Shown: positions 1 through 17,710 of the stretch, one piece after another
Numbering within the stretch: the first letter of the stretch is position 1
How the letters are laid out: each line of letters starts with the position of its first letter
Source of the DNA: Macrostomum lignano
Lineage: Eukaryota
DNA length: 17,710 bases
Assembly: GCA_002269645.1 (NCBI GenBank)
Contig: NIVC01005247.1
Location: 1-17,710 of the forward strand
Direction of reading: 5' to 3'
Position numbers and translations under genes: made by a program
The notes under the pieces: generated by a model
Databases searched by the model: none
What the model saw: only the letters and a program-made list of their open reading frames with translations
Told to the model about the DNA's origin: nothing

Positions 1-401
1 ACACTATGTTGACGACACTTTTGCCATTTTCAAAGCGAACTCGTATCATGAACGGTTTCTTACCGCTCTGAACTCCACTCATAAAAACATCCAGACTTAG
101 CATACCGGAATCAATGTACATCAAGAATAAAAAAACAAGTCTCAATGTCCAGCTTATTCACAGTGGTGCGGGTCATTTGTTCAAGGTATTCTTAGTGTAG
201 GCACGAAGCATTGTAGTGCGCCCGCCTGTTTAAAACTTCCATCCAATGTACCTTCATAATTGGACAATCTGCCCCCCCTTTGGACTGTACAGAAACGTTT
301 TCTTATATAATTTGATGCATACGTGAAAAATAAAATATATCTCAGACGCTGAACATGGCCGCTGACTAAACCAAACGCGTTGGCTGACTGATTTAATTAA
401 A
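1..401 (+). mobile_element. Penelope-like element relic, partial at window edge (RT YVDD fragment, endonuclease C-terminus, 3' region)
   Basis: HYVDDTFAIF...FLTALNSTHKNIQ, then IPESMYIKNKKTSLNVQ in another frame (102-200). These resemble PLE RT motif C and the PLE C-terminal 'ES..IK...PSLN' motif. The 3' boundary is approximate (set at ATTAAA 396-401). Confidence 0.7.
342..387 (+). ncRNA. Degenerate minimal hammerhead-ribozyme-like motif (PLE pLTR type), present in every unit
   Basis: TCAGACG-CTGAACA-TGG..CC-AAA-CGCG-TT-GGCTGA. CUGANGA-like and GAAA-like boxes are both mutated, with a palindromic ACGCGT stem III, flanking TCAGAC/GGCTGA pairing (1 mismatch) and ATTAAA 9 nt downstream. Confidence 0.4.
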
Positions 402-630
402 GCAATCTATGTTGGTTTTGTTATTTATATTTCTGTGCTTACTCAAGCGAGCTACTTTTTAGCTCAACAAAAGCTTCTGATGCATTCTGACCTCTACGTT
501 ATGTCGGATATACGTTCAACTCTAGTTGTTGCCTTGATAGGGTTGATTCTGGGCATCTCTGCACTTCGCACCGACAATGATATTGTCATTTTCGTTGGGA
601 TTAAAATAGCAACAATGCAATTAACCGGTT

Positions 631-669
631 CTCTCTCTCTCTCGCTCTCTCTTGCTCTCTTTCTCTGTC
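631..669 (+). repeat. Interrupted (CT)n microsatellite, length-variable among units
   Basis: First (CT) run has 6, 7, 6, 6, 8 and 7 copies in units 1-6, followed by GCTCTCTCTTGCTCTCTTTCTCTGTC. Confidence 0.95.
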
Positions 670-776
670 GTTTGGAGCCATTCGACACTCATCTAATACC
701 CAAAAAGGAAATAATAAAAAAGACAATGAACGAACAGCTTCAACGGAAATAATAACGCATACTTCCTTTCAATCGG

Positions 777-782
777 TTTATT
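777..782 (-). terminator. Putative polyadenylation signal AATAAA of the peptide gene (also 3192, 5604, 11734, 14151, 16563)
   Basis: Plus-strand TTTATT is AATAAA on the minus strand, ~100 nt downstream of the TAA stop at 886-888. Confidence 0.65.
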
Positions 783-885
783 TTTCAGTTTTGAATCAAC
801 TGAATCGCAGGTTGTCAAAACGCACTCCTCCTATTCTAGGACAATCGACGGTCATGCTTCCATCGTTACCTTAATTAAAACAGAT

Positions 886-1071
886 TTATCCGCCATATCC
901 TTCGCAAGGTACAAAATCCCCTGCGCCAGCGCAACCCAAACCGCTATTACATAATTCAGGATAGCTGATGTAGCAGACTTCTTGCAAGCAGTAACAGCCT
1001 TGTCCATTGGCTGAATATGCTGCAAACGCAAGAAGCAACACCAGAAGAGAGAGGAAAGCTAGTCTCTGCAT
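886..1071 (-). CDS. Secreted cysteine-rich peptide precursor, 61 aa, copy 1
   Basis: MQRLAFLSLLVLLLAFAAYSANG|QGCYCLQEVCYISYPELCNSGLGCAGAGDFVPCEGYGG*. Classical signal peptide (basic N-terminus, Leu core, A-x-G cleavage site) plus 6 Cys. The true ATG is at 1069-1071; the ORF track's 81-aa version starts at a TTG. Confidence 0.8.
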   Translation of the reverse strand: MQRLAFLSLLVLLLAFAAYSANGQGCYCLQEVCYISYPELCNSGLGCAGAGDFVPCEGYGG

Positions 1072-1136
1072 TTGAACGGCGCTTGTTGCGATAAAAAAGG
1101 GACAAAACTTGCTGTCTCTTAGTGATTTCAATCAGC

Positions 1137-1168
1137 AATACTGCCAAATGCCCATGCAAGGCTATATA
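1137..1168 (-). promoter_or_regulatory. Putative core promoter of the peptide gene (TATA-like box and Inr-like site), repeated in each unit
   Basis: Minus strand TATATAG at 1168-1162. GCAGT with its A at 1142 lies 26 nt downstream. There is no ATG between 1142 and the start codon. CCAAT on the minus strand at 1268-1264. Confidence 0.5.
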
Positions 1169-1506
1169 GAAAATCAGTCCGGATGCGATAAGCAGATTTA
1201 TTATCGGAAAGCTCCTTATTTGGTATACACTGCATATACACACGCACACGCCTAGTAGCGATTATTGGTCGGACACACAATCTGAAAGATTTTAGAAATT
1301 AGCGATGTTGAATGAACAGGAAAGGCGATAAAGGTAAACAGGCAGAGCACTACGGTAGGAGCACTAGCAGAATGCCGATTCCGAATGCAGAGTTGCGTTA
1401 AGAAATTTCCACTGACACTGGCAGGTGGAGTCTGGCTGATCACCACTTTAGCATCGATAGCATACTATACGAGAGTATTTTAGGCACGGCGAGATAGGAA
1501 AACGAG

Positions 1507-1545
1507 TTGAAGATTGAAGATTTAAGATTGGAGATTGATTGAAGA
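1507..1545 (+). repeat. Degenerate 7-bp tandem repeat (TTGAAGA)
   Basis: TTGAAGA TTGAAGA TTTAAGA TTGGAGA TTGA TTGAAGA. Confidence 0.8.
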
Positions 1546-1855
1546 CGGAGCATCATTGACTTTGCTAGGGGTAAAATATCCAGCGCGACAGATAAAACAT
1601 TTTTTATTATCGATAGGAGATGGGTACAGGCAAGGTGCAAGGTGAGAATATTGAACATTAATTAGCTAGCCCAGGGAGGTGACGGTAAAATGACTGACCG
1701 CAAGCTACGTAGTGTACAAGTGTACATAAAAAGCTGCTTTGACTGGCCGACAAAACCATCAAGACAGCACTGCCTTGCAGCTTAATGAAAAGCGGTAGGC
1801 TGTGCGGCATTTTGCTTATTTTTAGGTTTGCATAATTAAGCTAAAGAGAGTAAAT

Positions 1856-1926
1856 CCAGAAAAGAGATGCTAAGCTGTGGACAAGAATGACGCTTAGCAC
1901 CTCTCCACAGACAATCCCGTTTCTGG
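1856..1926 (-). other. Crossing inverted repeats (pseudoknot-capable) inside an outer stem, present in every unit
   Basis: 1864-1875 pairs with 1892-1903 (12 bp; one A.C on plus becomes G.U on minus). 1876-1881 pairs with 1904-1909 (6 bp). 1856-1862 pairs with 1920-1926 (7 bp). Confidence 0.6.
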
Positions 1927-2082
1927 TTTATCCAGCCTGGGGCTGGTGCACATTTTCGGTTTGGGAGGCCGTAATTACGTGCTGGCTGCTGTCTGGTGCA
2001 GGTGCAATTGCGCGCGTGCACTATCCCTGGATGATAACGCTGAAGCCAAAGCTTTTTAAGCCCAGGCCGATAGCATACGGAT

Positions 2083-2370
2083 ATCGAGATGCTGTTAAGG
2101 AACGCCGAGACCTGGACGCTGACGGAATCGCTCGAACAGCAGGGTCGATGCGGCGCACGCTGGCCTGCTGCGCGCCGCCTTCAAGATCGGTTACGAGCGA
2201 GTCACCAATGCGGCACTCTATTGCTGCACCGGCCTGCTCCGTCCAAGCGAGCTGTTGTGCCGTCGGCGACTCCAGCTGGCAGGCCATATTTTATCCGAGC
2301 CGAGTCGTACTGCCCACAGCCGGTGCAGGAGGTGCTGCTGCTGACGCTGCAAGCACCCTACCGGCGGGGG
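2083..2370 (+). pseudogene. Degenerate RTE retrotransposon fragment (C-terminal coding part), copy 1
   Basis: Aligns by eye to 11178-11463 of the full-length element at roughly 85-90% identity, with frameshifts. Encodes NAETWTLT and IRAESYCPQPVQEVLLLTLQAPYRRG. Confidence 0.93.
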
Positions 2371-2814
2371 AAGCAGTGGATGACACCCTAAATTGTGCGC
2401 CTAGATTCTACAAACACTATGTTGACGACACTTTTGCCATTTTCAAAGCGAACTCGTATCATGAACGGTTTCTTACCGCTCTGAACTCCACTCATAAAAA
2501 CATCCAGACTTAGCATACCGGAATCAATGTACATCAAGAATAAAAAAACAAGTCTCAATGTCCAGCTTATTCACAGTGGTGCGGGTCATTTGTTCAAGGT
2601 ATTCTTAGTGTAGGCACGAAGCATTGTAGTGCGCCCGCCTGTTTAAAACTTCCATCCAATGTACCTTCATAATTGGACAATCTGCCCCCCCTTTGGACTG
2701 TACAGAAACGTTTTCTTATATAATTTGATGCATACGTGAAAAATAAAATATATCTCAGACGCTGAACATGGCCGCTGACTAAACCAAACGCGTTGGCTGA
2801 CTGATTTAATTAAA
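2371..2814 (+). mobile_element. Internally deleted Penelope-like element relic
   Basis: APRFYKHYVDDTFAIF...FLTALNSTHKNIQ (RT motif C region) is joined at ~2510 to IPESMYIKNKKTSLNVQ (PLE C-terminus), then a hammerhead-like motif (2755-2800) and ATTAAA (2809-2814). Confidence 0.72.
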
Positions 2815-3300
2815 GCAATCTATGTTGGTTTTGTTATTTATATTTCTGTGCTTACTCAAGCGAGCTACTTTTTAGCTCAACAAAAGCTTCTGATGCATTC
2901 TGACCTCTACGTTATGTCGGATATACGTTCAACTCTAGTTGTTGCCTTGATAGGGTTGATTCTGGGCATCTCTGCACTTCGCACCGACAATGATATTGTC
3001 ATTTTCGTTGGGATTAAAATAGCAACAATGCAATTAACCGGTTCTCTCTCTCTCTCTCGCTCTCTCTTGCTCTCTTTCTCTGTCGTTTGGAGCCATTCGA
3101 CACTCATCTAATACCCAAAAAGGAAATAATAAAAAAGACAATGAACGAACAGCTTCAACGGAAATAATAACGCATACTTCCTTTCAATCGGTTTATTTTT
3201 CAGTTTTGAATCAACTGAATCGCAGGTTGTCAAAACGCACTCCTCCTATTCTAGGACAATCGACGGTCATGCTTCCATCGTTACCTTAATTAAAACAGAT

Positions 3301-3486
3301 TTATCCGCCATATCCTTCGCAAGGTACAAAATCCCCTGCGCCAGCGCAACCCAAACCGCTATTACATAATTCAGGATAGCTGATGTAGCAGACTTCTTGC
3401 AAGCAGTAACAGCCTTGTCCATTGGCTGAATATGCTGCAAACGCAAGAAGCAACACCAGAAGAGAGAGGAAAGCTAGTCTCTGCAT
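3301..3486 (-). CDS. Secreted cysteine-rich peptide precursor, copy 2
   Basis: Translation identical to copy 1. Confidence 0.8.
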   Translation of the reverse strand: MQRLAFLSLLVLLLAFAAYSANGQGCYCLQEVCYISYPELCNSGLGCAGAGDFVPCEGYGG

Positions 3487-4497
3487 TTGAACGGCGCTTG
3501 TTGCGATAAAAAAGGGACAAAACTTGCTGTCTCTTAGTGATTTCAATCAGCAATACTGCCAAATGCCCATGCAAGGCTATATAGAAAATCAGTCCGGATG
3601 CGATAAGCAGATTTATTATCGGAAAGCTCCTTATTTGGTATACACTGCATATACACACGCACACGCCTAGTAGCGATTATTGGTCGGACACACAATCTGA
3701 AAGATTTTAGAAATTAGCGATGTTGAATGAACAGGAAAGGCGATAAAGGTAAACAGGCAGAGCACTACGGTAGGAGCACTAGCAGAATGCCGATTCCGAA
3801 TGCAGAGTTGCGTTAAGAAATTTCCACTGACACTGGCAGGTGGAGTCTGGCTGATCACCACTTTAGCATCGATAGCATACTATACGAGAGTATTTTAGGC
3901 ACGGCGAGATAGGAAAACGAGTTGAAGATTGAAGATTTAAGATTGGAGATTGATTGAAGACGGAGCATCATTGACTTTGCTAGGGGTAAAATATCCAGCG
4001 CGACAGATAAAACATTTTTTATTATCGATAGGAGATGGGTACAGGCAAGGTGCAAGGTGAGAATATTGAACATTAATTAGCTAGCCCAGGGAGGTGACGG
4101 TAAAATGACTGACCGCAAGCTACGTAGTGTACAAGTGTACATAAAAAGCTGCTTTGACTGGCCGACAAAACCATCAAGACAGCACTGCCTTGCAGCTTAA
4201 TGAAAAGCGGTAGGCTGTGCGGCATTTTGCTTATTTTTAGGTTTGCATAATTAAGCTAAAGAGAGTAAATCCAGAAAAGAGATGCTAAGCTGTGGACAAG
4301 AATGACGCTTAGCACCTCTCCACAGACAATCCCGTTTCTGGTTTATCCAGCCTGGGGCTGGTGCACATTTTCGGTTTGGGAGGCCGTAATTACGTGCTGG
4401 CTGCTGTCTGGTGCAGGTGCAATTGCGCGCGTGCACTATCCCTGGATGATAACGCTGAAGCCAAAGCTTTTTAAGCCCAGGCCGATAGCATACGGAT

Positions 4498-4784
4498 ATC
4501 GAGATGCTGTTAAGGAACGCCGAGACCTGGACGCTGACGGAATCGCTCGAACAGCAGGGTCGATGCGGCGCACGCTGGCCTGCTGCGCGCCGCCTTCAAG
4601 ATCGGTTACGAGCGAGTCACCAATGCGGCACTCTATTGCTGCACCGGCCTGCTCCGTCCAAGCGAGCTGTTGTGCCGTCGGCGACTCCAGCTGGCAGGCC
4701 ATATTTTATCCGAGCCGAGTCGTACTGCCCACAGCCGGTGCAGGAGGTGCTGCTGCTGACGCTGCAAGCACCCTACCGGCGGGG
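4498..4784 (+). pseudogene. Degenerate RTE fragment, copy 2
   Basis: Same as 2083-2370; terminal G run is G4 instead of G5. Confidence 0.93.
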
Positions 4785-5228
4785 AAGCAGTGGATGACAC
4801 CCTAAATTGTGCGCCTAGATTCTACAAACACTATGTTGACGACACTTTTGCCATTTTCAAAGCGAACTCGTATCATGAACGGTTTCTTACCGCTCTGAAC
4901 TCCACTCATAAAAACATCCAGACTTAGCATACCGGAATCAATGTACATCAAGAATAAAAAAACAAGTCTCAATGTCCAGCTTATTCACAGTGGTGCGGGT
5001 CATTTGTTCAAGGTATTCTTAGTGTAGGCACGAAGCATTGTAGTGCGCCCGCCTGTTTAAAACTTCCATCCAATGTACCTTCATAATTGGACAATCTGCC
5101 CCCCCTTTGGACTGTACAGAAACGTTTTCTTATATAATTTGATGCATACGTGAAAAATAAAATATATCTCAGACGCTGAACATGGCCGCTGACTAAACCA
5201 AACGCGTTGGCTGACTGATTTAATTAAA
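4785..5228 (+). mobile_element. Internally deleted Penelope-like element relic
   Basis: Same sequence as 2371-2814. Confidence 0.72.
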
Positions 5229-5712
5229 GCAATCTATGTTGGTTTTGTTATTTATATTTCTGTGCTTACTCAAGCGAGCTACTTTTTAGCTCAACAAAAG
5301 CTTCTGATGCATTCTGACCTCTACGTTATGTCGGATATACGTTCAACTCTAGTTGTTGCCTTGATAGGGTTGATTCTGGGCATCTCTGCACTTCGCACCG
5401 ACAATGATATTGTCATTTTCGTTGGGATTAAAATAGCAACAATGCAATTAACCGGTTCTCTCTCTCTCTCGCTCTCTCTTGCTCTCTTTCTCTGTCGTTT
5501 GGAGCCATTCGACACTCATCTAATACCCAAAAAGGAAATAATAAAAAAGACAATGAACGAACAGCTTCAACGGAAATAATAACGCATACTTCCTTTCAAT
5601 CGGTTTATTTTTCAGTTTTGAATCAACTGAATCGCAGGTTGTCAAAACGCACTCCTCCTATTCTAGGACAATCGACGGTCATGCTTCCATCGTTACCTTA
5701 ATTAAAACAGAT

Positions 5713-5898
5713 TTATCCGCCATATCCTTCGCAAGGTACAAAATCCCCTGCGCCAGCGCAACCCAAACCGCTATTACATAATTCAGGATAGCTGATGTAG
5801 CAGACTTCTTGCAAGCAGTAACAGCCTTGTCCATTGGCTGAATATGCTGCAAACGCAAGAAGCAACACCAGAAGAGAGAGGAAAGCTAGTCTCTGCAT
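5713..5898 (-). CDS. Secreted cysteine-rich peptide precursor, copy 3
   Basis: Translation identical to copy 1. Confidence 0.8.
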   Translation of the reverse strand: MQRLAFLSLLVLLLAFAAYSANGQGCYCLQEVCYISYPELCNSGLGCAGAGDFVPCEGYGG

Positions 5899-6908
5899 TT
5901 GAACGGCGCTTGTTGCGATAAAAAAGGGACAAAACTTGCTGTCTCTTAGTGATTTCAATCAGCAATACTGCCAAATGCCCATGCAAGGCTATATAGAAAA
6001 TCAGTCCGGATGCGATAAGCAGATTTATTATCGGAAAGCTCCTTATTTGGTATACACTGCATATACACACGCACACGCCTAGTAGCGATTATTGGTCGGA
6101 CACACAATCTGAAAGATTTTAGAAATTAGCGATGTTGAATGAACAGGAAAGGCGATAAAGGTAAACAGGCAGAGCACTACGGTAGGAGCACTAGCAGAAT
6201 GCCGATTCCGAATGCAGAGTTGCGTTAAGAAATTTCCACTGACACTGGCAGGTGGAGTCTGGCTGATCACCACTTTAGCATCGATAGCATACTATACGAG
6301 AGTATTTTAGGCACGGCGAGATAGGAAAACGAGTTGAAGATTGAAGATTTAAGATTGGAGATTGATTGAAGACGGAGCATCATTGACTTTGCTAGGGGTA
6401 AAATATCCAGCGCGACAGATAAAACATTTTTTTTATCGATAGGAGATGGGTACAGGCAAGGTGCAAGGTGAGAATATTGAACATTAATTAGCTAGCCCAG
6501 GGAGGTGACGGTAAAATGACTGACCGCAAGCTACGTAGTGTACAAGTGTACATAAAAAGCTGCTTTGACTGGCCGACAAAACCATCAAGACAGCACTGCC
6601 TTGCAGCTTAATGAAAAGCGGTAGGCTGTGCGGCATTTTGCTTATTTTTAGGTTTGCATAATTAAGCTAAAGAGAGTAAATCCAGAAAAGAGATGCTAAG
6701 CTGTGGACAAGAATGACGCTTAGCACCTCTCCACAGACAATCCCGTTTCTGGTTTATCCAGCCTGGGGCTGGTGCACATTTTCGGTTTGGGAGGCCGTAA
6801 TTACGTGCTGGCTGCTGTCTGGTGCAGGTGCAATTGCGCGCGTGCACTATCCCTGGATGATAACGCTGAAGCCAAAGCTTTTTAAGCCCAGGCCGATAGC
6901 ATACGGAT

Positions 6909-7196
6909 ATCGAGATGCTGTTAAGGAACGCCGAGACCTGGACGCTGACGGAATCGCTCGAACAGCAGGGTCGATGCGGCGCACGCTGGCCTGCTGCGCG
7001 CCGCCTTCAAGATCGGTTACGAGCGAGTCACCAATGCGGCACTCTATTGCTGCACCGGCCTGCTCCGTCCAAGCGAGCTGTTGTGCCGTCGGCGACTCCA
7101 GCTGGCAGGCCATATTTTATCCGAGCCGAGTCGTACTGCCCACAGCCGGTGCAGGAGGTGCTGCTGCTGACGCTGCAAGCACCCTACCGGCGGGGG
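6909..7196 (+). pseudogene. Degenerate RTE fragment, copy 3
   Basis: Same as 2083-2370. Confidence 0.93.
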
Positions 7197-7639
7197 AAGC
7201 AGTGGATGACACCCTAAATTGTGCGCCTAGATTCTACAAACACTATGTTGACGACACTTTTGCCATTTTCAAAGCGAACTCGTATCATGAACGGTTTCTT
7301 ACCGCTCTGAACTCCACTCATAAAAACATCCAGACTTAGCATACCGGAATCAATGTACATCAAGAATAAAAAAACAAGTCTCAATGTCCAGCTTATTCAC
7401 AGTGGTGCGGGTCATTTGTTCAAGGTATTCTTAGTGTAGGCACGAAGCATTGTAGTGCGCCCGCCTGTTTAAAACTTCCATCCAATGTACCTTCATAATT
7501 GGACAATCTGCCCCCCTTTGGACTGTACAGAAACGTTTTCTTATATAATTTGATGCATACGTGAAAAATAAAATATATCTCAGACGCTGAACATGGCCGC
7601 TGACTAAACCAAACGCGTTGGCTGACTGATTTAATTAAA
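7197..7639 (+). mobile_element. Internally deleted Penelope-like element relic
   Basis: Same as 2371-2814 except a C6 rather than C7 run. Confidence 0.72.
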
Positions 7640-7901
7640 GCAATCTATGTTGGTTTTGTTATTTATATTTCTGTGCTTACTCAAGCGAGCTACTTTTTAG
7701 CTCAACAAAAGCTTCTGATGCATTCTGACCTCTACGTTATGTCGGATATACGTTCAACTCTAGTTGTTGCCTTGATAGGGTTGATTCTGGGCATCTCTGC
7801 ACTTCGCACCGACAATGATATTGTCATTTTCGTTGGGATTAAAATAGCAACAATGCAATTAACCGGTTCTCTCTCTCTCTCGCTCTCTCTTGCTCTCTTT
7901 C

Positions 7902-7907
7902 TCTGTC
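7902..7907 (+). repeat. Left target-site duplication TCTGTC
   Basis: Empty units read CTCTGTCGTTTGG. The filled unit has TCTGTC at both 7902-7907 and 11621-11626. Confidence 0.9.
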
Positions 7908-8448
7908 TTAATTTATTTGCAGTCTTAATTTATTTGCAGTCTTAATTTATTTGCAGTCTTAATTTATTTGCAGTCTTAATTTATTTGCAGTCTTAATTTA
8001 TTTGCAGTCTTAATTTATTTGCAGTCTTAATTTATTTGCAGTCTTAATTTATTTGCAGTCTTAATTTATTTGCAGTCTTAATTTATTTGCAGTCTTAATT
8101 TATTTGCAGTCTTAATTTATTTGCAGTCTTAATTTATTTGCAGTCTTAATTTATTTGCAGTCTTAATTTATTTGCAGTCTTAATTTATTTGCAGTCTTAA
8201 TTTATTTGCAGTCTTAATTTATTTGCAGTCTTAATTTATTTGCAGTCTTAATTTATTTGCAGTCTTAATTTATTTGCAGTCTTAATTTATTTGCAGTCTT
8301 AATTTATTTGCAGTCTTAATTTATTTGCAGTCTTAATTTATTTGCAGTCTTAATTTATTTGCAGTCTTAATTTATTTGCAGTCTTAATTTATTTGCAGTC
8401 TTAATTTATTTGCAGTCTTAATTTATTTGCAGTCTTAATTTATTTGCA
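7905..8448 (+). repeat. 32 perfect tandem copies of GTCTTAATTTATTTGCA (17 bp) at the retrotransposon 5' end
   Basis: 544 bp = 32 x 17. Phase was checked at every 60-nt line start and no variant was seen. The first GTC is shared with the TSD. Confidence 0.98.
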
Positions 8449-8465
8449 CCACGGTGCAGATAAAT
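8438..8465 (+). other. 12-bp hairpin with CACG loop at the junction of the repeat array and the ORF
   Basis: ATTTATTTGCAC-CACG-GTGCAGATAAAT, with one G.U pair. The last two stem bases are the AT of ATG 8464-8466. Confidence 0.8.
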
Positions 8466-11400
8466 GCCGCTACCTCCTCGTGGTCAGAGCGGAGAGCCGC
8501 GCTTAACTGCTGCGGCGGCCAAATGCGGCAGGACCAAGCGAGGGCAGCGGAGCGCCCGTCGGCGTGTTGAGCGCCGGCGTGAGCGGAACCGACGAGGCCG
8601 GCTGCGTGGCGCCGCCCGTCGAGCTGCCGCGCGGGTCCACTCGGATCCTCCGGGTGGCGCCGGGGACCGTGAGGCTCAACTGCATCGAGCCCCAGCCGTA
8701 CCACAGGGCATGCTTCGGGTCGGGACGCTGAACTGCCGCACTCTCAAGGCTGCTTGGCGTAGAGGGGTGCTGGCGAAGCTGGCGTACGACCTGAGCTGCG
8801 ACATCATCTCGCTGCAGGAGGTGTCTATCAAGGCCGACCCGGGACTTCATTGTGAGGACTTGGGCGCCGGGTGGACCCTCTACTATACTTCTGCGGACCA
8901 GCGAGGCCGTGGAGGAGTTGGAGCGCTGATCGGGCCGAGGCTGCAGCAGAGCTGTCGCTGCATCTCCCTGTCCCCCGGTTGCTTCGGATCGACGTCCGGC
9001 TACGCGGTCGGAATGCTCGCCTGTTCTGCGCGTACGCGCCCCCTGCCACACGCCCTGACGAGGCTCAAGAGTTTTTCGAGCAGCTCTCAGTGCAGGTAGA
9101 GGCGACGGCGCAGCGTGACACAGCGGTCGCCCTCGGAGACCTGAACGCAGTCCTGCGTAGGTCCGAGAGGTCGCTGTTCGTGACGCCACGCGGGAACAAC
9201 AACACCGAGGCACTAGAGGACTTCCTGGAGAGGCAGGACATGGTGTCGGCCAACACCCGCTTCCGCAAGCCACTGAGCGGTCTCGCAACCTTCGTGGGCT
9301 GCAAGCGGAGGCGACGGAACGCGCGTGGCAGGAACGCAACCCGGAGACAAGCACAGCTCGACCACGTGCTCGTGCGTTTCCGTGAGCGTCGTCGCGCCGT
9401 CAACTGCCGCACCATCACGCCGCTGGCTCTGCGGTCCGATCACCGGCTCCTCATCTGCGACCTCAACCTTCGCGATCCGCTCTACCGTCCGCCGAAGCGG
9501 CCACCGCGGCGCTACTACCGCGCGCTCAGAGCCACCGATACGCAGCGTCGCTTTGCTAGCGCCTTTAACACCGCGCTGGGCGACAAGCGTGGAAGTGCCG
9601 AGTATGCGGAAGTGTGCGCTGCAATCAGAACCGCCGCGGAGCAAGCAGTCCCGATGATGCAGCCGGCTCAACGTGGGCAGCCGGTCTGGCAGGACGACCC
9701 CGCGATTCAGGCAGCGAGGGAAGATCTGGAGAAGCTCCGCTTGAGCAGGCGACCAACCCGCGAGGCAGAGGCAGCTCTGGCAGCTGTCTACCTGCAGCGC
9801 CAACAAGCGGCTGTCGATGACGCCATTCAGGCTGTCTCTGCCGCTGGGCCCGATGCCAGAGGGCGCGTGGCCTGGTCCGCCATCAACGCTCTGACGGGAC
9901 GAAAGCGGCGCAATCCGCTGAACCTGGCTGGTGACACGCCGGACGAGCGTAGGAACGAGCTGCGCGAGTTCTTCGCCGCCATCGTCAACGCGCCGCCACC
10001 CCCGCTGCCAGACAGTCTGACGCTGCCGCCGGAGACGCCGCTGCCGGCAGAGGAGAGTTTCAGCGTAGCCCCAGTCAACGCAGCCGACGTTGTCAAGCTC
10101 GCCCAGCAGTCACCGGGCGGGAAAGCGCTGGGTCCGGACGAGGTGCCCATCGAGGCGCTGCGCATCCCCTGTGTGGCCGCTGAGGTCGCCAGAGTGATGA
10201 ACCGCGTGCTCTTCGGTGAGGCGGCGCCCAACGAATGGACCACGGCGCACATCGTCGCTGTTCCAAAGAAGCCGGGCACCACTAGGCTTGAAGACCATCG
10301 AGGCATCTGCCTTCAGTCCTGTGCAGCGAAGCTGTTCAACCGGATGCTGCTTTCGCGGTTGCAGCCCGTGCTGGATCCGTACCTGCGCCCAGAGCAGAAC
10401 GGGTTCCGGCCCCATCGCGGCACAGTGGCGCAGATCCTGGCTCTTCGCCGAGTCATCGAGGAGGCGCGGATTCGTCAGTCGATACTGATTTTAATCTTTA
10501 TTGATTTCAAGAAGGCATTCGACTCGGTTGTCAGAGCCGTGCTTCCAATGGTGCTCCGCGCGTACAACGTGCCTGAGCAGCTGATCTCCGCCGTCATGGC
10601 GATGTACCGTGATACGACAGCTGCTGTGACAACACCGGACGGCCTATCGGACTCCTTTGAGACATCCTCCGGAGTGCTTCAGGGAGATACGCTGGCGCCG
10701 TTTCTGTTCGTCCTGGTGCTTGACTGGGTGCTGCGGACTGCTCTTCCTACCGACGACGACGGTTTTCTGCTGCAGCGACGCGTGGGTCGACGTCAACCGG
10801 AGAAGCGGCTCAGCGTGCTTGGCTACGCCGACGACCTCGCCCTGCTGTCCTCGACCGTCGAGGGCGCCCAACGGCAGCTGGACAGGCTGGTTGCCGTTGC
10901 GGCGAGTGTCGGCCTGGTGGTCAACACGCAGAAGACCGTTGTGCTCTGCGTGCCGGACGACATCGAGGCTGCAATATTTTGCCGAGGCGCTGACGGGCAG
11001 GCGACCGAACTCCCGCGATGTCAGCAGTTCGTCTACCTCGGCGGTCTGGTTCCAGACGCTCGCGAGGACCTGCGACGCCGCCGCGGGCTTGCCTGGGCTG
11101 CCTTTCGTTCTGTGAGGGCAGTCCTGCAGTCCGAGGCCCTACCGGACCGCCAGAGGGCGGCGCTGTTCCAGGCGGTAATCGAGACCGTCCTGCTGTACAA
11201 CGCCGAGACCTGGACGCTGACGGACTCACTCGAACAGCAAGTCGATGCGGCGCACGCTGGTCTGCTGCGCGCCGCCTTCAACATCGGCGTCGAGCGAGTC
11301 ACCAACGCGGCACTCTATCGCCGCGCTGGCCTGCCACGTCCAAGTGATCTACTGCGCCGTCGGCGACTCCAGCTCGCAGGCCATCTCATCCGCGCCGAGT

Positions 11401-11575
11401 CGTACTGCCACAGCCGGTGCAGGAGGTGCTGCTGCTCACGCTGCAGGCACCCTACCGGCGAGGTCAAGCGCGAACTCGGCGTTATGTCGACTGTCTGCTG
11501 GCTGACGCCGGCGCCCCGGACACTGCCGGTGGCGCGGCCTTTGTTCGCGCCCACGCCATGAAGCGCGCCCTGTGA
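8464..11575 (+). CDS. Retrotransposon APE endonuclease-reverse transcriptase polyprotein (1037 aa if two missing C bases are restored; frameshifts at 8972-8976 and 11408-11409)
   Basis: APE motifs: TLNCRTL, LQEV, CAYAP, GDLNA, LDHVL, SDH. RT motifs: HRGICL, EQNGFR, IDFKKAFDSV, GVLQGDTLAPFLF, YADDL, GLVVNTQKT, YLGG. Split across track ORFs 8464-9099 and 8871-11561; the corrected stop is TGA 11573-11575. Confidence 0.9.
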
Positions 11576-11605
11576 CGCTGACTTTTACCATCATGACAGC
11601 GTATT

Positions 11606-11620
11606 TTGTTGTTGTTGTTG
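11606..11620 (+). repeat. (TTG)5 3' tail of the retrotransposon
   Basis: TTG x5 directly before the right TSD. RTE elements typically end in short tandem repeats. Confidence 0.9.
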
Positions 11621-11626
11621 TCTGTC
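11621..11626 (+). repeat. Right target-site duplication TCTGTC
   Basis: Followed by GTTTGGAGCC, where the host unit resumes. Confidence 0.9.
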
Positions 11627-11842
11627 GTTTGGAGCCATTCGACACTCATCTAATACCCAAAAAGGAAATAATAAAAAAGACAATGAACGAACAGCTTCAA
11701 CGGAAATAATAACGCATACTTCCTTTCAATCGGTTTATTTTTCAGTTTTGAATCAACTGAATCGCAGGTTGTCAAAACGCACTCCTCCTATTCTAGGACA
11801 ATCGACGGTCATGCTTCCATCGTTACCTTAATTAAAACAGAT

Positions 11843-12028
11843 TTATCCGCCATATCCTTCGCAAGGTACAAAATCCCCTGCGCCAGCGCAACCCAAACCG
11901 CTATTACATAATTCAGGATAGCTGATGTAGCAGACTTCTTGCAAGCAGTAACAGCCTTGTCCATTGGCTGAATATGCTGCAAACGCAAGAAGCAACACCA
12001 GAAGAGAGAGGAAAGCTAGTCTCTGCAT
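11843..12028 (-). CDS. Secreted cysteine-rich peptide precursor, copy 4
   Basis: Translation identical to copy 1; not disrupted by the insertion. Confidence 0.8.
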   Translation of the reverse strand: MQRLAFLSLLVLLLAFAAYSANGQGCYCLQEVCYISYPELCNSGLGCAGAGDFVPCEGYGG

Positions 12029-13039
12029 TTGAACGGCGCTTGTTGCGATAAAAAAGGGACAAAACTTGCTGTCTCTTAGTGATTTCAATCAGCAATACTG
12101 CCAAATGCCCATGCAAGGCTATATAGAAAATCAGTCCGGATGCGATAAGCAGATTTATTATCGGAAAGCTCCTTATTTGGCATACACTGCATATACACAC
12201 GCACACGCCTAGTAGCGATTATTGGTCGGACACACAATCTGAAAGATTTTAGAAATTAGCGATGTTGAATGAACAGGAAAGGCGATAAAGGTAAACAGGC
12301 AGAGCACTACGGTAGGAGCACTAGCAGAATGCCGATTCCGAATGCAGAGTTGCGTTAAGAAATTTCCACTGACACTGGCAGGTGGAGTCTGGCTGATCAC
12401 CACTTTAGCATCGATAGCATACTATACGAGAGTATTTTAGGCACGGCGAGATAGGAAAACGAGTTGAAGATTGAAGATTTAAGATTGGAGATTGATTGAA
12501 GACGGAGCATCATTCACTTTGCTAGGGGTAAAATATCCAGCGCGACAGATAAAACATTTTTTATTATCGATAGGAGATGGGTACAGGCAAGGTGCAAGGT
12601 GAGAATATTGAACATTAATTAGCTAGCCCAGGGAGGTGACGGTAAAATGACTGACCGCAAGCTACGTAGTGTACAAGTGTACATAAAAAGCTGCTTTGAC
12701 TGGCCGACAAAACCATCAAGACAGCACTGCCTTGCAGCTTAATGAAAAGCGGTAGGCTGTGCGGCATTTTGCTTATTTTTAGGTTTGCATAATTAAGCTA
12801 AAGAGAGTAAATCCAGAAAAGAGATGCTAAGCTGTGGACAAGAATGACGCTTAGCACCTCTCCACAGACAATCCCGTTTCTGGTTTATCCAGCCTGGGGC
12901 TGGTGCACATTTTCGGTTTGGGAGGCCGTAATTACGTGCTGGCTGCTGTCTGGTGCAGGTGCAATTGCGCGCGTGCACTATCCCTGGATGATAACGCTGA
13001 AGCCAAAGCTTTTTAAGCCCAGGCCGATAGCATACGGAT

Positions 13040-13327
13040 ATCGAGATGCTGTTAAGGAACGCCGAGACCTGGACGCTGACGGAATCGCTCGAACAGCAGG
13101 GTCGATGCGGCGCACGCTGGCCTGCTGCGCGCCGCCTTCAAGATCGGTTACGAGCGAGTCACCAATGCGGCACTCTATTGCTGCACCGGCCTGCTCCGTC
13201 CAAGCGAGCTGTTGTGCCGTCGGCGACTCCAGCTGGCAGGCCATATTTTATCCGAGCCGAGTCGTACTGCCCACAGCCGGTGCAGGAGGTGCTGCTGCTG
13301 ACGCTGCAAGCACCCTACCGGCGGGGG
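13040..13327 (+). pseudogene. Degenerate RTE fragment, copy 4
   Basis: Same as 2083-2370. Confidence 0.93.
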
Positions 13328-13771
13328 AAGCAGTGGATGACACCCTAAATTGTGCGCCTAGATTCTACAAACACTATGTTGACGACACTTTTGCCATTTT
13401 CAAAGCGAACTCGTATCATGAACGGTTTCTTACCGCTCTGAACTCCACTCATAAAAACATCCAGACTTAGCATACCGGAATCAATGTACATCAAGAATAA
13501 AAAAACAAGTCTCAATGTCCAGCTTATTCACAGTGGTGCGGGTCATTTGTTCAAGGTATTCTTAGTGTAGGCACGAAGCATTGTAGTGCGCCCGCCTGTT
13601 TAAAACTTCCATCCAATGTACCTTCATAATTGGACAATCTGCCCCCCCTTTGGACTGTACAGAAACGTTTTCTTATATAATTTGATGCATACGTGAAAAA
13701 TAAAATATATCTCAGACGCTGAACATGGCCGCTGACTAAACCAAACGCGTTGGCTGACTGATTTAATTAAA
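13328..13771 (+). mobile_element. Internally deleted Penelope-like element relic
   Basis: Same as 2371-2814. Confidence 0.72.
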
Positions 13772-14259
13772 GCAATCTATGTTGGTTTTGTTATTTATAT
13801 TTCTGTGCTTACTCAAGCGAGCTACTTTTTAGCTCAACAAAAGCTTCTGATGCATTCTGACCTCTACGTTATGTCGGATATACGTTCAACTCTAGTTGTT
13901 GCCTTGATAGGGTTGATTCTGGGCATCTCTGCACTTCGCACCGACAATGATATTGTCATTTTCGTTGGGATTAAAATAGCAACAATGCAATTAACCGGTT
14001 CTCTCTCTCTCTCTCTCGCTCTCTCTTGCTCTCTTTCTCTGTCGTTTGGAGCCATTCGACACTCATCTAATACCCAAAAAGGAAATAATAAAAAAGACAA
14101 TGAACGAACAGCTTCAACGGAAATAATAACGCATACTTCCTTTCAATCGGTTTATTTTTCAGTTTTGAATCAACTGAATCGCAGGTTGTCAAAACGCACT
14201 CCTCCTATTCTAGGACAATCGACGGTCATGCTTCCATCGTTACCTTAATTAAAACAGAT

Positions 14260-14445
14260 TTATCCGCCATATCCTTCGCAAGGTACAAAATCCCCTGCGC
14301 CAGCGCAACCCAAACCGCTATTACATAATTCAGGATAGCTGATGTAGCAGACTTCTTGCAAGCAGTAACAGCCTTGTCCATTGGCTGAATATGCTGCAAA
14401 CGCAAGAAGCAACACCAGAAGAGAGAGGAAAGCTAGTCTCTGCAT
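14260..14445 (-). CDS. Secreted cysteine-rich peptide precursor, copy 5
   Basis: Translation identical to copy 1. Confidence 0.8.
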   Translation of the reverse strand: MQRLAFLSLLVLLLAFAAYSANGQGCYCLQEVCYISYPELCNSGLGCAGAGDFVPCEGYGG

Positions 14446-15455
14446 TTGAACGGCGCTTGTTGCGATAAAAAAGGGACAAAACTTGCTGTCTCTTAGTGAT
14501 TTCAATCAGCAATACTGCCAAATGCCCATGCAAGGCTATATAGAAAATCAGTCCGGATGCGATAAGCAGATTTATTATCGGAAAGCTCCTTATTTGGTAT
14601 ACACTGCATATACACACGCACACGCCTAGTAGCGATTATTGGTCGGACACACAATCTGAAAGATTTTAGAAATTAGCGATGTTGAATGAACAGGAAAGGC
14701 GATAAAGGTAAACAGGCAGAGCACTACGGTAGGAGCACTAGCAGAATGCCGATTCCGAATGCAGAGTTGCGTTAAGAAATTTCCACTGACACTGGCAGGT
14801 GGAGTCTGGCTGATCACCACTTTAGCATCGATAGCATACTATACGAGAGTATTTTAGGCACGGCGAGATAGGAAAACGAGTTGAAGATTGAAGATTTAAG
14901 ATTGGAGATTGATTGAAGACGGAGCATCATTGACTTTGCTAGGGGTAAAATATCCAGCGCGACAGATAAAACATTTTTTATTATCGATAGGAGATGGGTA
15001 CAGGCAAGGTGCAAGGTGAGAATATTGAACATTAATTAGCTAGCCCAGGGGGTGACGGTAAAATGACTGACCGCAAGCTACGTAGTGTACAAGTGTACAT
15101 AAAAAGCTGCTTTGACTGGCCGACAAAACCATCAAGACAGCACTGCCTTGCAGCTTAATGAAAAGCGGTAGGCTGTGCGGCATTTTGCTTATTTTTAGGT
15201 TTGCATAATTAAGCTAAAGAGAGTAAATCCAGAAAAGAGATGCTAAGCTGTGGACAAGAATGACGCTTAGCACCTCTCCACAGACAATCCCGTTTCTGGT
15301 TTATCCAGCCTGGGGCTGGTGCACATTTTCGGTTTGGGAGGCCGTAATTACGTGCTGGCTGCTGTCTGGTGCAGGTGCAATTGCGCGCGTGCACTATCCC
15401 TGGATGATAACGCTGAAGCCAAAGCTTTTTAAGCCCAGGCCGATAGCATACGGAT

Positions 15456-15742
15456 ATCGAGATGCTGTTAAGGAACGCCGAGACCTGGACGCTGACGGAA
15501 TCGCTCGAACAGCAGGGTCGATGCGGCGCACGCTGGCCTGCTGCGCGCCGCCTTCAAGATCGGTTACGAGCGAGTCACCAATGCGGCACTCTATTGCTGC
15601 ACCGGCCTGCTCCGTCCAAGCGAGCTGTTGTGCCGTCGGCGACTCCAGCTGGCAGGCCATATTTTATCCGAGCCGAGTCGTACTGCCCACAGCCGGTGCA
15701 GGAGGTGCTGCTGCTGACGCTGCAAGCACCCTACCGGCGGGG
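15456..15742 (+). pseudogene. Degenerate RTE fragment, copy 5
   Basis: Same as 2083-2370; terminal run is G4. Confidence 0.93.
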
Positions 15743-16185
15743 AAGCAGTGGATGACACCCTAAATTGTGCGCCTAGATTCTACAAACACTATGTTGACGA
15801 CACTTTTGCCATTTTCAAAGCGAACTCGTATCATGAACGGTTTCTTACCGCTCTGAACTCCACTCATAAAAACATCCAGACTTAGCATACCGGAATCAAT
15901 GTACATCAAGAATAAAAAAACAAGTCTCAATGTCCAGCTTATTCACAGTGGTGCGGGTCATTTGTTCAAGGTATTCTTAGTGTAGGCACGAAGCATTGTA
16001 GTGCGCCCGCCTGTTTAAAACTTCCATCCAATGTACCTTCATAATTGGACAATCTGCCCCCCTTTGGACTGTACAGAAACGTTTTCTTATATAATTTGAT
16101 GCATACGTGAAAAATAAAATATATCTCAGACGCTGAACATGGCCGCTGACTAAACCAAACGCGTTGGCTGACTGATTTAATTAAA
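15743..16185 (+). mobile_element. Internally deleted Penelope-like element relic
   Basis: Same as 2371-2814 except a C6 run. Confidence 0.72.
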
Positions 16186-16671
16186 GCAATCTATGTTGGT
16201 TTTGTTATTTATATTTCTGTGCTTACTCAAGCGAGCTACTTTTTAGCTCAACAAAAGCTTCTGATGCATTCTGACCTCTACGTTATGTCGGATATACGTT
16301 CAACTCTAGTTGTTGCCTTGATAGGGTTGATTCTGGGCATCTCTGCACTTCGCACCGACAATGATATTGTCATTTTCGTTGGGATTAAAATAGCAACAAT
16401 GCAATTAACCGGTTCTCTCTCTCTCTCTCGCTCTCTCTTGCTCTCTTTCTCTGTCGTTTGGAGCCATTCGACACTCATCTAATACCCAAAAAGGAAATAA
16501 TAAAAAAGACAATGAACGAACAGCTTCAACGGAAATAATAACGCATACTTCCTTTCAATCGGTTTATTTTTCAGTTTTGAATCAACTGAATCGCAGGTTG
16601 TCAAAACGCACTCCTCCTATTCTAGGACAATCGACGGTCATGCTTCCATCGTTACCTTAATTAAAACAGAT

Positions 16672-16857
16672 TTATCCGCCATATCCTTCGCAAGGTACAA
16701 AATCCCCTGCGCCAGCGCAACCCAAACCGCTATTACATAATTCAGGATAGCTGATGTAGCAGACTTCTTGCAAGCAGTAACAGCCTTGTCCATTGGCTGA
16801 ATATGCTGCAAACGCAAGAAGCAACACCAGAAGAGAGAGGAAAGCTAGTCTCTGCAT
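16672..16857 (-). CDS. Secreted cysteine-rich peptide precursor, copy 6
   Basis: Translation identical to copy 1. Confidence 0.8.
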   Translation of the reverse strand: MQRLAFLSLLVLLLAFAAYSANGQGCYCLQEVCYISYPELCNSGLGCAGAGDFVPCEGYGG

Positions 16858-17710
16858 TTGAACGGCGCTTGTTGCGATAAAAAAGGGACAAAACTTGCTG
16901 TCTCTTAGTGATTTCAATCAGCAATACTGCCAAATGCCCATGCAAGGCTATATAGAAAATCAGTCCGGATGCGATAAGCAGATTTATTATCGGAAAGCTC
17001 CTTATTTGGTATACACTGCATATACACACGCACACGCCTAGTAGCGATTATTGGTCGGACACACAATCTGAAAGATTTTAGAAATTAGCGATGTTGAATG
17101 AACAGGAAAGGCGATAAAGGTAAACAGGCAGAGCACTACGGTAGGAGCACTAGCAGAATGCCGATTCCGAATGCAGAGTTGCGTTAAGAAATTTCCACTG
17201 ACACTGGCAGGTGGAGTCTGGCTGATCACCACTTTAGCATCGATAGCATACTATACGAGAGTATTTTAGGCACGGCGAGATAGGAAAACGAGTTGAAGAT
17301 TGAAGATTTAAGATTGGAGATTGATTGAAGACGGAGCATCATTGACTTTGCTAGGGGTAAAATATCCAGCGCGACAGATAAAACATTTTTTATTATCGAT
17401 AGGAGATGGGTACAGGCAAGGTGCAAGGTGAGAATATTGAACATTAATTAGCTAGCCCAGGGAGGTGACGGTAAAATGACTGACCGCAAGCTACGTAGTG
17501 TACAAGTGTACATAAAAAGCTGCTTTGACTGGCCGACAAAACCATCAAGACAGCACTGCCTTGCAGCTTAATGAAAAGCGGTAGGCTGTGCGGCATTTTG
17601 CTTATTTTAGGTTTGCATAATTAAGCTAAAAGAGAGTAAATCCAGAAAAGAGATGCTAAGCTGTGGACAAGAATGACGCTTAGCACCTCTCCACAGACAA
17701 TCCCGTTTCT

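Follow-up and report, generated by a model that had tools for sequence, protein, structure and literature searches.

The reiterated terminus and its hairpin

How does a retrotransposon come to carry, immediately in front of its reading frame, 32 identical copies of one 17-bp unit, and do these copies belong to the place of insertion or to the element itself? The question is raised by a stretch of 17,710 nt (contig NIVC01005247.1; here called the window, at its full length), which holds a 3.7-kb retrotransposon of the type lacking long terminal repeats (non-LTR; ~3.2 kb without the array) that encodes an endonuclease and a reverse transcriptase (RT) and has such an array as its 5' end. The repeated unit was found to be the 5' terminus of the element, and related elements carry arrays of their own with different 17-base units, which suggests that the element's own copying cycle regenerates its front end. 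The features on which this account depends are as follows.

Left target-site duplication (TSD), 7902 to 7907, forward strand: TCTGTC, 6 bp, whose final trinucleotide, GTC, at the same time opens repeat 1
Array, 7905 to 8448, forward strand: 32 perfect tandem copies of GTCTTAATTTATTTGCA, 544 bp, the element's 5'-terminal 17 nt reiterated
Hairpin, 8438 to 8465, forward strand: 5' arm 8438-8449 (11 nt from the end of repeat 32, then C8449), loop 8450-8453 (CACG), 3' arm 8454-8465
Open reading frame (ORF), 8464 to 11575, forward strand: endonuclease of the apurinic/apyrimidinic (APE) type and RT, with ATG at 8464, 16 nt past the array, and stop codon at 11573-11575
Right TSD, 11621 to 11626, forward strand: TCTGTC

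Tandem Repeats Finder reported for 7905-8448 of the forward strand a period of 17 and 32.0 copies with 100% matches and 0 indels (score 1088). A pattern search for GTCTTAATTTATTTGCA that allowed up to 3 mismatches returned exactly 32 copies in the window, each with 0 mismatches and none outside the array, as compared with 0.08 expected by chance and with 200 shuffled sequences, none of which reached 32. Junctions between units inside the array read TTTATTTGCAG|TC. The array arrived with the element or was formed within it, in that it lies between the TSDs: five empty units of the surrounding host repeat read ...CTCTTTCTCTGTCGTTTGG and have no array, the filled unit has TCTGTC on both sides of the insertion, and alignment of the five empty units with the two junctions gives an empty site of ...CTCTTTCTCTGTC|GTTTGG. 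The trinucleotide GTC at 7905-7907 is common to the left TSD and repeat 1, a 3-nt microhomology at the 5' junction, and because of this double membership the number of element-derived units is 31.8 to 32; within the microhomology, the array starts in phase with nt 1 of the unit. The count of 32 is that of the assembly, and such arrays are present independently in four other assemblies. A preliminary description of the locus had reported 32 invariant 17-mers at these positions, their location inside the TSDs, the sharing of GTC with the target and the entry of the final copy into a hairpin with repeat sequence as its 5' arm, and each of these observations has been borne out here.

The final copy (8432-8448) runs into a stem formed by 8438-8449 and 8454-8465, with a folding energy of -13.9 kcal/mol (z = -3.9), and the 3' arm of this stem closes with the first two bases of the start codon, A and U. 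The same fold is found at all nine 5' ends now available for the family, as a hairpin of 11-14 bp (z = -3.3 to -5.4). Bases 7-18 pair with bases 23-34, nt 1-17 form a module of the type GT...YTTTKCA, and the C that closes the loop is base 18 in six of the nine members, which places the unit at bases 1-17 and makes the next base the one that closes the loop. Among the five members that align without gaps, 55 of 55 cells are paired and three pairs have changed on both sides (for example, from G-C to U-A), compared with 32-60% of cells paired in controls in which the 3' partner was slid by 1-3 columns. Mismatches within the stem are all G-U wobbles, which on the complementary strand would be C-A, so that it is the RNA of the plus strand that folds in this way. 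Since the 5' arm lies inside the unit, unit sequence and 3' arm co-evolve, and all units of each array match the proximal copy that is constrained by the hairpin. The hairpin is most likely an RNA element that serves translation control or protein binding.

Arrays in related elements

Contigs encoding homologues of the protein were collected and their 5' ends were read, which together with the window gave the nine 5' ends of the family. The comparison is one of related elements across families and samples rather than of copies from one genome, and the array counts in relatives are minima, since their contigs begin within the arrays. The nine ends read as follows.

Window: 32 copies of GTCTTAATTTATTTGCA, then C, cacg and GTGCAGATAAATG
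L015 (ENA; 56% protein identity; (ATT)n tail): contig begins inside at least 8.5 perfect copies of GTCTTAGCATATTTTCA, then C, tgcg and GTGGAAATATG
L012 (JGI): contig begins inside at least 5.2 perfect copies of GTATCTTTATATTTGCA, then C, tct and GTGCAAATATG
L007 (Logan): begins with GTGCCATGATATTTTCA, period 17
L010 (Logan): begins with GTGTTGGCTATTTTCA, period 16
L013 (the closest among relatives whose 5' end is available): a single unit, GTCTTGAATTATTTGCA, with unrelated sequence before it and a hairpin like that of the other members
L003: one unit
L004: ~1.4 units
L001: hairpin only, with a (TCATTCAC)n tract upstream

The four relatives with perfect arrays (L015, L012, L007 and L010) are 56-78% identical in protein, and each has its own unit of 16 or 17 nt. 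At a lag of 17, no mismatch was found in 127 comparisons for L015 or in 71 for L012. The contigs of L007 and L010 each open with exactly 30 array bases, which is k-1 for k = 31, the value we take to be the k-mer of the Logan assembly; starts of this length would match the breakage of a contig at the cycle/exit branch of a longer array. All observed arrays are perfect, down to the edge unit that borders on unique sequence, which does not differ from the others. When L013 and the window are aligned locally, the match begins at nt 1 of the unit (79.8% identity over 366 nt), and homology starting at this base means that what is repeated is the 5'-terminal 17 nt of the element itself.

Unit counts across the family are 1, 1, ~1.4, at least 5, at least 8 and 32, which agrees with the earlier expectation that unit number would be variable rather than fixed. 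To the question whether other copies lack the repeat, which had been raised along with it, the answer is divided: L015, L012, L007 and L010 carry arrays of their own, while L013 and L003 have a single unit and L004 has ~1.4. Four more distant relatives (L002, L005, L006 and L011; 49-65% protein identity to the window) have a long, unrelated 5' untranslated region (UTR) with neither hairpin nor array, so that the feature is limited to one sub-lineage. Judged from these sequences, the array is a trait of that sub-lineage and not of the window locus. Alignment searches with the N-terminal part of the protein yielded two distant loci in metagenome contigs and no others there, both of them uninformative at the 5' end, and 0 loci in viral contigs. 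A scan for the pattern TTTKCAGT-N9-TTTKCAGT-N9-TTTKCA gave 2 loci among viral contigs and 64 among contigs of prokaryotic genomes, every one an unrelated 17-bp tandem repeat; the sole locus among them with a tblastn match to the element RT (L030; 23% identity over 229 aa, E = 3e-7) was taken to encode an unrelated prokaryotic RT.

Three further observations concern individual 5' ends. The unit of L007 (GTGCCATGATATTTTCA, 1-30) contains an ATG that would open a 6-codon upstream ORF per pair of units, which means that arrays can contain upstream AUGs. In L004 (85-120), ATTTGC followed by G stands upstream of the single unit; these 6 nt equal the end of a unit and keep the 17-nt spacing, but the junction has G for A, and this stretch may be a partial outer unit joined via a cap-derived G or a chance match. 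The microsatellite (TCATTCAC)n of L001 lies directly upstream of its 5' end and can be compared with the (TC)n edge at which the window element is inserted.

How the arrays could arise

The unit coincides with the terminus and keeps its period as its sequence diverges, the edge unit does not differ from the others and the number of units varies; taken together, these properties are best fitted by a templated process that is linked to the end of the element and seeded from the proximal side. We tentatively propose, as a reading that is plausible without being probable, that the arrays arise and stay uniform through repeated copying of the terminal module during reverse transcription. The element RNA would start with the 17-nt module (nt 1-17), and first-strand cDNA would arrive at the 5' end of an RNA that has more than one unit. 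The 3' end of the cDNA, being complementary to a whole unit, could then re-pair one unit inward and copy the end anew, with one identical unit gained per slip. Transcripts initiated at an internal junction would lose outer units, and such loss from the outside, combined with re-copying from the inside, would hold all units identical to the proximal copy while the unit number is set at each insertion. The beginning of the array at nt 1 of the unit matches the prediction of run-off at the 5' end of the RNA.

In stringent-type long interspersed nuclear elements (LINEs) such as UnaL2, the RT makes short repeats at template ends, and against that background the (TTG)n tail at the 3' end of the window element indicates that an RT of this kind already does so. 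That a LINE-type RT also adds repeats at the 5' end of its own RNA, and in this way rebuilds and homogenizes the leader array at every insertion, is possible but in our view rather doubtful. If true, it would be a built-in answer to the erosion of 5' ends in non-LTR elements and a functional analogue of telomerase translocation in an ordinary transposon RT.

Several points weigh against the re-copying of the terminus. First, the comparisons run between families and samples and not between copies of one genome, and a young insertion would show a perfect array under any mechanism. Second, the unit is followed by C18-C19-A20 where GTC would be needed; a single unit thus has no microhomology that would help it to become two, and this initial duplication must be either rare or ancestral. 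Third, each slip must melt a 17-bp RNA-cDNA hybrid. Fourth, the apparent partial outer unit of L004 is out of phase and has G for A at the junction. Fifth, minisatellites are also homogenized by DNA slippage and unequal exchange, and arrays that are inherited through RNA and altered by DNA slippage fit the identical pattern. Finally, the conserved helix sits 3' of the unit on the RNA and is passed by the RT before the unit is copied, so that it cannot serve as a 5' boundary of the telomerase type.

This last point removes one part of the preliminary description, which had drawn on telomerase, with the boundary helix beside its template, as a precedent: the helix (nt 7-18/23-34) overlaps the unit and extends to its 3' side, only the end of the RNA lies 5', and from this position the hairpin is not a template boundary. 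The wider suggestion made there, of telomerase-like iterative synthesis, is partly supported, insofar as the array is a family trait of variable length whose units equal the hairpin-proximal copy, but it loses the boundary helix, and the protein is an ordinary LINE-type RT rather than one like TERT. Pfam recorded only RVT_1 and Exo_endo_phos, and the closest solved structures are those of R2 and L1 ORF2p. With regard to a template of slightly more than one repeat, L004 has ~1.4 units and L013 and L003 have 1.0 unit each, as DNA.

The array could instead be an inherited 5' UTR or promoter module, that is, an array of initiators which is passed on via RNA and whose unit number is altered mainly by DNA slippage or unequal exchange. 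Such a module would be a miniature analogue of the mouse L1 monomers, providing many start sites and moving the AUG hairpin away from the cap. We consider this a serious possibility, albeit an unlikely one. Every junction in the five arrays reads CA|GT (TTTGCAGTC, TTTGCAGTA, TTTTCAGTC, TTTTCAGTG and TTTTCAGTG) and thus presents an initiator-like TCAGT or GCAGT, the final copy reading CA|C, and single-unit copies start at G1, as expected for RNAs begun at the last junction; however, the extra A that a start at the A of CA|GT would leave is absent from all copies. Tandem units upstream of the ORF, in numbers varying from 1 to 32 across the family, are what a promoter module would look like, but starts within the array can only shorten it, and a separate process of expansion is still needed. 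Turnover at the DNA level, moreover, usually leaves the edge unit the most diverged, whereas it is identical in five arrays. Precedents for short 5' repeats exist in MoTeR (PMC7367193) and FoTeR (PMC12857005). A motif resembling a downstream promoter element, AGATA at +28 from the last junction, is present in the window only, being absent at that place from L013 and L012 on inspection by hand, and was taken as a chance occurrence.

An expansion confined to the locus, in which a minisatellite grew after insertion and has no connection with the life cycle of the element, is improbable. Recent replication slippage does yield perfect 17-bp arrays, and the genome of the window is represented by a single copy. 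Four other families, however, from other samples and assemblers, have arrays at the matching place, with matching period and phase and with units of their own, and the boundary of the unit is the terminus of the element.

Distinctly improbable, in our judgement, is an origin through trans-splicing, either as an array of strong 3' splice acceptors that would give read-through transcripts a capped leader or as relict truncated spliced leaders, one added per cycle. Each junction, YTTTKCAG|T, does resemble a 3' splice site, with a T-rich tract and CAG. The 3' half of the M. lignano leader (AGACTCAATTTATTGCA) matches the repeat at 15 of 18 positions (AGACTCAATTTA-TTGCA versus AGTCTTAATTTATTTGCA; shuffle p = 0.004), where AGTCTTAATTTATTTGCA is the junction plus unit at 7921-7938 or at any other repeat junction and the leader sequence is that of PMC8629364, and the part of the leader after its internal AG has 17 nt, the length of the unit. 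Trans-splicing reportedly affects ~10 to 30% of Macrostomum genes, by species and method (PMC8629364, PMC10468722), and the leader is reported to be highly conserved within the genus (PMC10468722). The window unit is nevertheless not identical to this highly conserved leader, and the units of the other families are unlike it (p = 0.17 to 1.0), although the leaders of those hosts may differ. No full leader precedes the window array or the single unit of L013, the last copy ends in CA-C in nine of nine elements where a leader-to-body junction would not give C, and the unit covaries with a 3' arm that the element itself encodes. The resemblance between unit and leader may represent coincidence, ancient capture or mimicry.

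An artefact of assembly, whether in the array as such or in its 32-unit length, is scarcely credible, for although perfect short-period repeats are prone to length errors and the two 1-nt deletions in C runs of the ORF could be sequencing errors, arrays occur independently in SPAdes-style NODE, JGI and Logan contigs and one of the two frameshifts is common to another contig (L014).

The element, its host repeat and known systems

The remaining features of the window are the following.

3' UTR, 11576 to 11620, forward strand: short, with a small stem ACGCTG...CAGCGT and the end ATTTTG(TTG)n, (TTG)5 lying at 11606-11620
Host tandem repeat, left part, 1 to 7901, forward strand: a (TC)n tract, a (TTGAAGA)4.6 block and older retroelement fragments per unit
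Host tandem repeat, right part, 11627 to 17710, forward strand: continuation of the satellite

The ORF matches RVT_1 of Pfam with 98.4 bits (E = 5.8e-28), and its RT domain matches the PDB structures of R2Bm, R2Tg and L1 ORF2p (E = 1e-17 to 1e-20). Exo_endo_phos scores 17.7 bits on the window copy, which is under the Pfam cut-off, and PF03372 is recorded on most full-length homologues. The APE-type endonuclease is N-terminal to the RT within one ORF, which begins so close to the array that there is no space for an ORF1. The ORF of the window copy is interrupted at two C runs, 8972-8976 (C5) and 11408-11409, each of which has lost 1 nt. The first has C5 where C6 maintains the frame (..SLSP|RLLRIDV..) and recurs in L014 (~510-514), an independent low-coverage contig with a SPAdes NODE-style name and ~82% nucleotide identity to the window, which makes a sequencing error improbable; it could be the mark of a non-autonomous sub-lineage or a recoding site. 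The second is not present in the fragment embedded in the host repeat. The best database homologues are 56-89% identical in protein, and because many of them come from Macrostomum lignano, the host is probably a flatworm of that group.

The 3' ends of relatives consist of (TTG)n, (TTATG)n or (ATT)n. An end of GTATTTTG(TTG)n is common to the 3' UTRs of the window (11600-11620), L003 and L007, and its T-rich core resembles the core of the 5' unit (TATTTTCA or TATTTGCA), so that the RT may meet a similar motif at either end of the RNA.

A candidate ribozyme downstream of the array was rejected. Self-cleaving ribozymes of this type, with a nested double pseudoknot (P1, P1.1, P2, P3 and P4), occur at the 5' end of R2 and of some RTE elements. 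The HDV-like (hepatitis delta virus-like) ribozyme drz-agam-1 was suggested at 8455-8528 with 28.8 bits, below the Rfam gathering score of 37; its P1 cannot pair, the stretch codes for MPLPPRGQSGEPR, relatives have insertions in the region, and the match is driven by ACCUCCUCGUGGU and G+C-rich stems. A search for ribozymes in eight relatives gave 0 matches, a scan with a P1/P3/P1.1 descriptor gave no more matches than shuffled sequence, and an Rfam scan of the whole window at gathering thresholds gave 0 matches.

The window itself is a tandem repeat with a unit of ~2414 bp, present in at least 7 units (spacings of 2411-2417 bp and 95-100% identity among direct-repeat families). This satellite, at ~42% G+C, is interrupted once, by 3.7 kb at 62-68% G+C. 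Compared with other host units, the flanks of the insertion have 0 substitutions and only small length changes, so that the insertion is young. Its site is the 3' border of an imperfect (TC)n tract, which varies in length by 2-4 bp between host units (3043-3081, 7870-7904, 14000-14040 and 16414-16452). ORF translations of host units include RTE-like and other RT fragments: each unit (e.g. 2414-4827, with ORFs 1887-2513 and 2089-2391) holds the 3' fragment of a related RTE-like element (..LLRNAETWTLTESLEQQ...IRAESYCPQPVQEVLLLTLQAPYRRG), which adjoins a piece of another RT (..YVDDTFAIF..). The host satellite is a tandem repeat that was assembled from pieces of retroelements and was later entered by a live relative.

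Non-LTR elements lose 5' sequence upon incomplete transcription or reverse transcription, which raises the question of how their 5' ends are kept or rebuilt, the monomer arrays of mouse L1 included. The present family provides an unusually clean case, in which a short unit is the exact terminus, the arrays are perfect and the period is kept among families whose proteins differ by more than 40%, with a unit sequence that changes in step with a covarying hairpin. The pattern permits a direct test of whether a LINE RT repeatedly re-copies the end of its template, and the outcome would be relevant to how retrotransposon RTs and telomerase are connected in evolution. If the array proved to be one of initiators or splice acceptors, it would show how an element without a promoter recruits host transcription or trans-splicing.

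Elements of the RTE clade have a single ORF, a microsatellite 3' tail and a short TSD. The window element appears to be RTE-like, an assignment made solely from architecture: like RTE-1, BovB and SR2/Perere-type elements, it has one APE plus RT ORF, no ORF1 and a length of ~3.2 kb without the array, as well as very short UTRs, a short-repeat 3' end in place of poly(A) and a short TSD. It differs from the clade in the terminal array of 16- or 17-nt units and the AUG-holding 5' hairpin, neither of which is known to have been described for this clade or was found for it in the literature searched.

Telomerase is alike in outline, since there too a DNA 3' end realigns on a template a little longer than a single repeat and is extended up to a fixed stop, which produces perfect repeats. 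In the process proposed here, however, the stop would be the physical 5' end of the RNA, with the conserved helix on the 3' side of the unit instead of the 5' side; the 17-nt unit would impose a far longer hybrid to be melted; the enzyme is a LINE-type RT in which no TERT-specific domains were seen; and the product is internal to a transposon rather than at a chromosome end. The RT of R2 reaches the 5' end of its RNA and continues on another template without releasing the cDNA, which is likewise a non-LTR RT proceeding past an RNA 5' end onto a new template. R2 jumps end-to-end to the 3' ends of other RNAs, often with untemplated bases, whereas the junctions here are exact and the acceptor would be internal and in register. 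Dinoflagellate retrogenes carry arrays of relict spliced leaders at their 5' ends and are similar in their tandem units of ~16-17 nt ending in AG, in their retro-copied 5' ends and in the trans-splicing organism; they differ in that the present unit is, as far as could be judged, not a host leader, has no full leader upstream, ends its last copy in C and pairs with the element.

In the literature searched, we found no description of 5' arrays of short units in RTE elements or flatworm LINEs, nor of an RTE-type element whose own terminal 17 nt form perfect arrays joined to a covarying hairpin that holds the AUG. Other retrotransposons that begin with tandem repeats are mouse L1, with its monomers, and SVA, with its (CCCTCT)n hexamer. 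The 5' end of MoTeR reads TTCGGG[TTTGGG]8 (PMC7367193), and FoTeR elements have 5' variable number tandem repeats (PMC12857005). The four systems are alike in having 5' tandem repeats whose number varies between copies, but the monomers of mouse L1 are ~200 bp long and mutually diverged, and the repeats of MoTeR are telomere-like and linked to the target site. The family described here, by contrast, repeats its own terminal 17 nt in perfect arrays, with a unit that overlaps a covarying hairpin and that keeps its period while its sequence differs between families. Non-LTR elements with short 5' tandem repeats are thus already known, and what appears to be new, judged from the literature searched, is a perfect array of the element's own terminus together with a covarying hairpin that holds the AUG.

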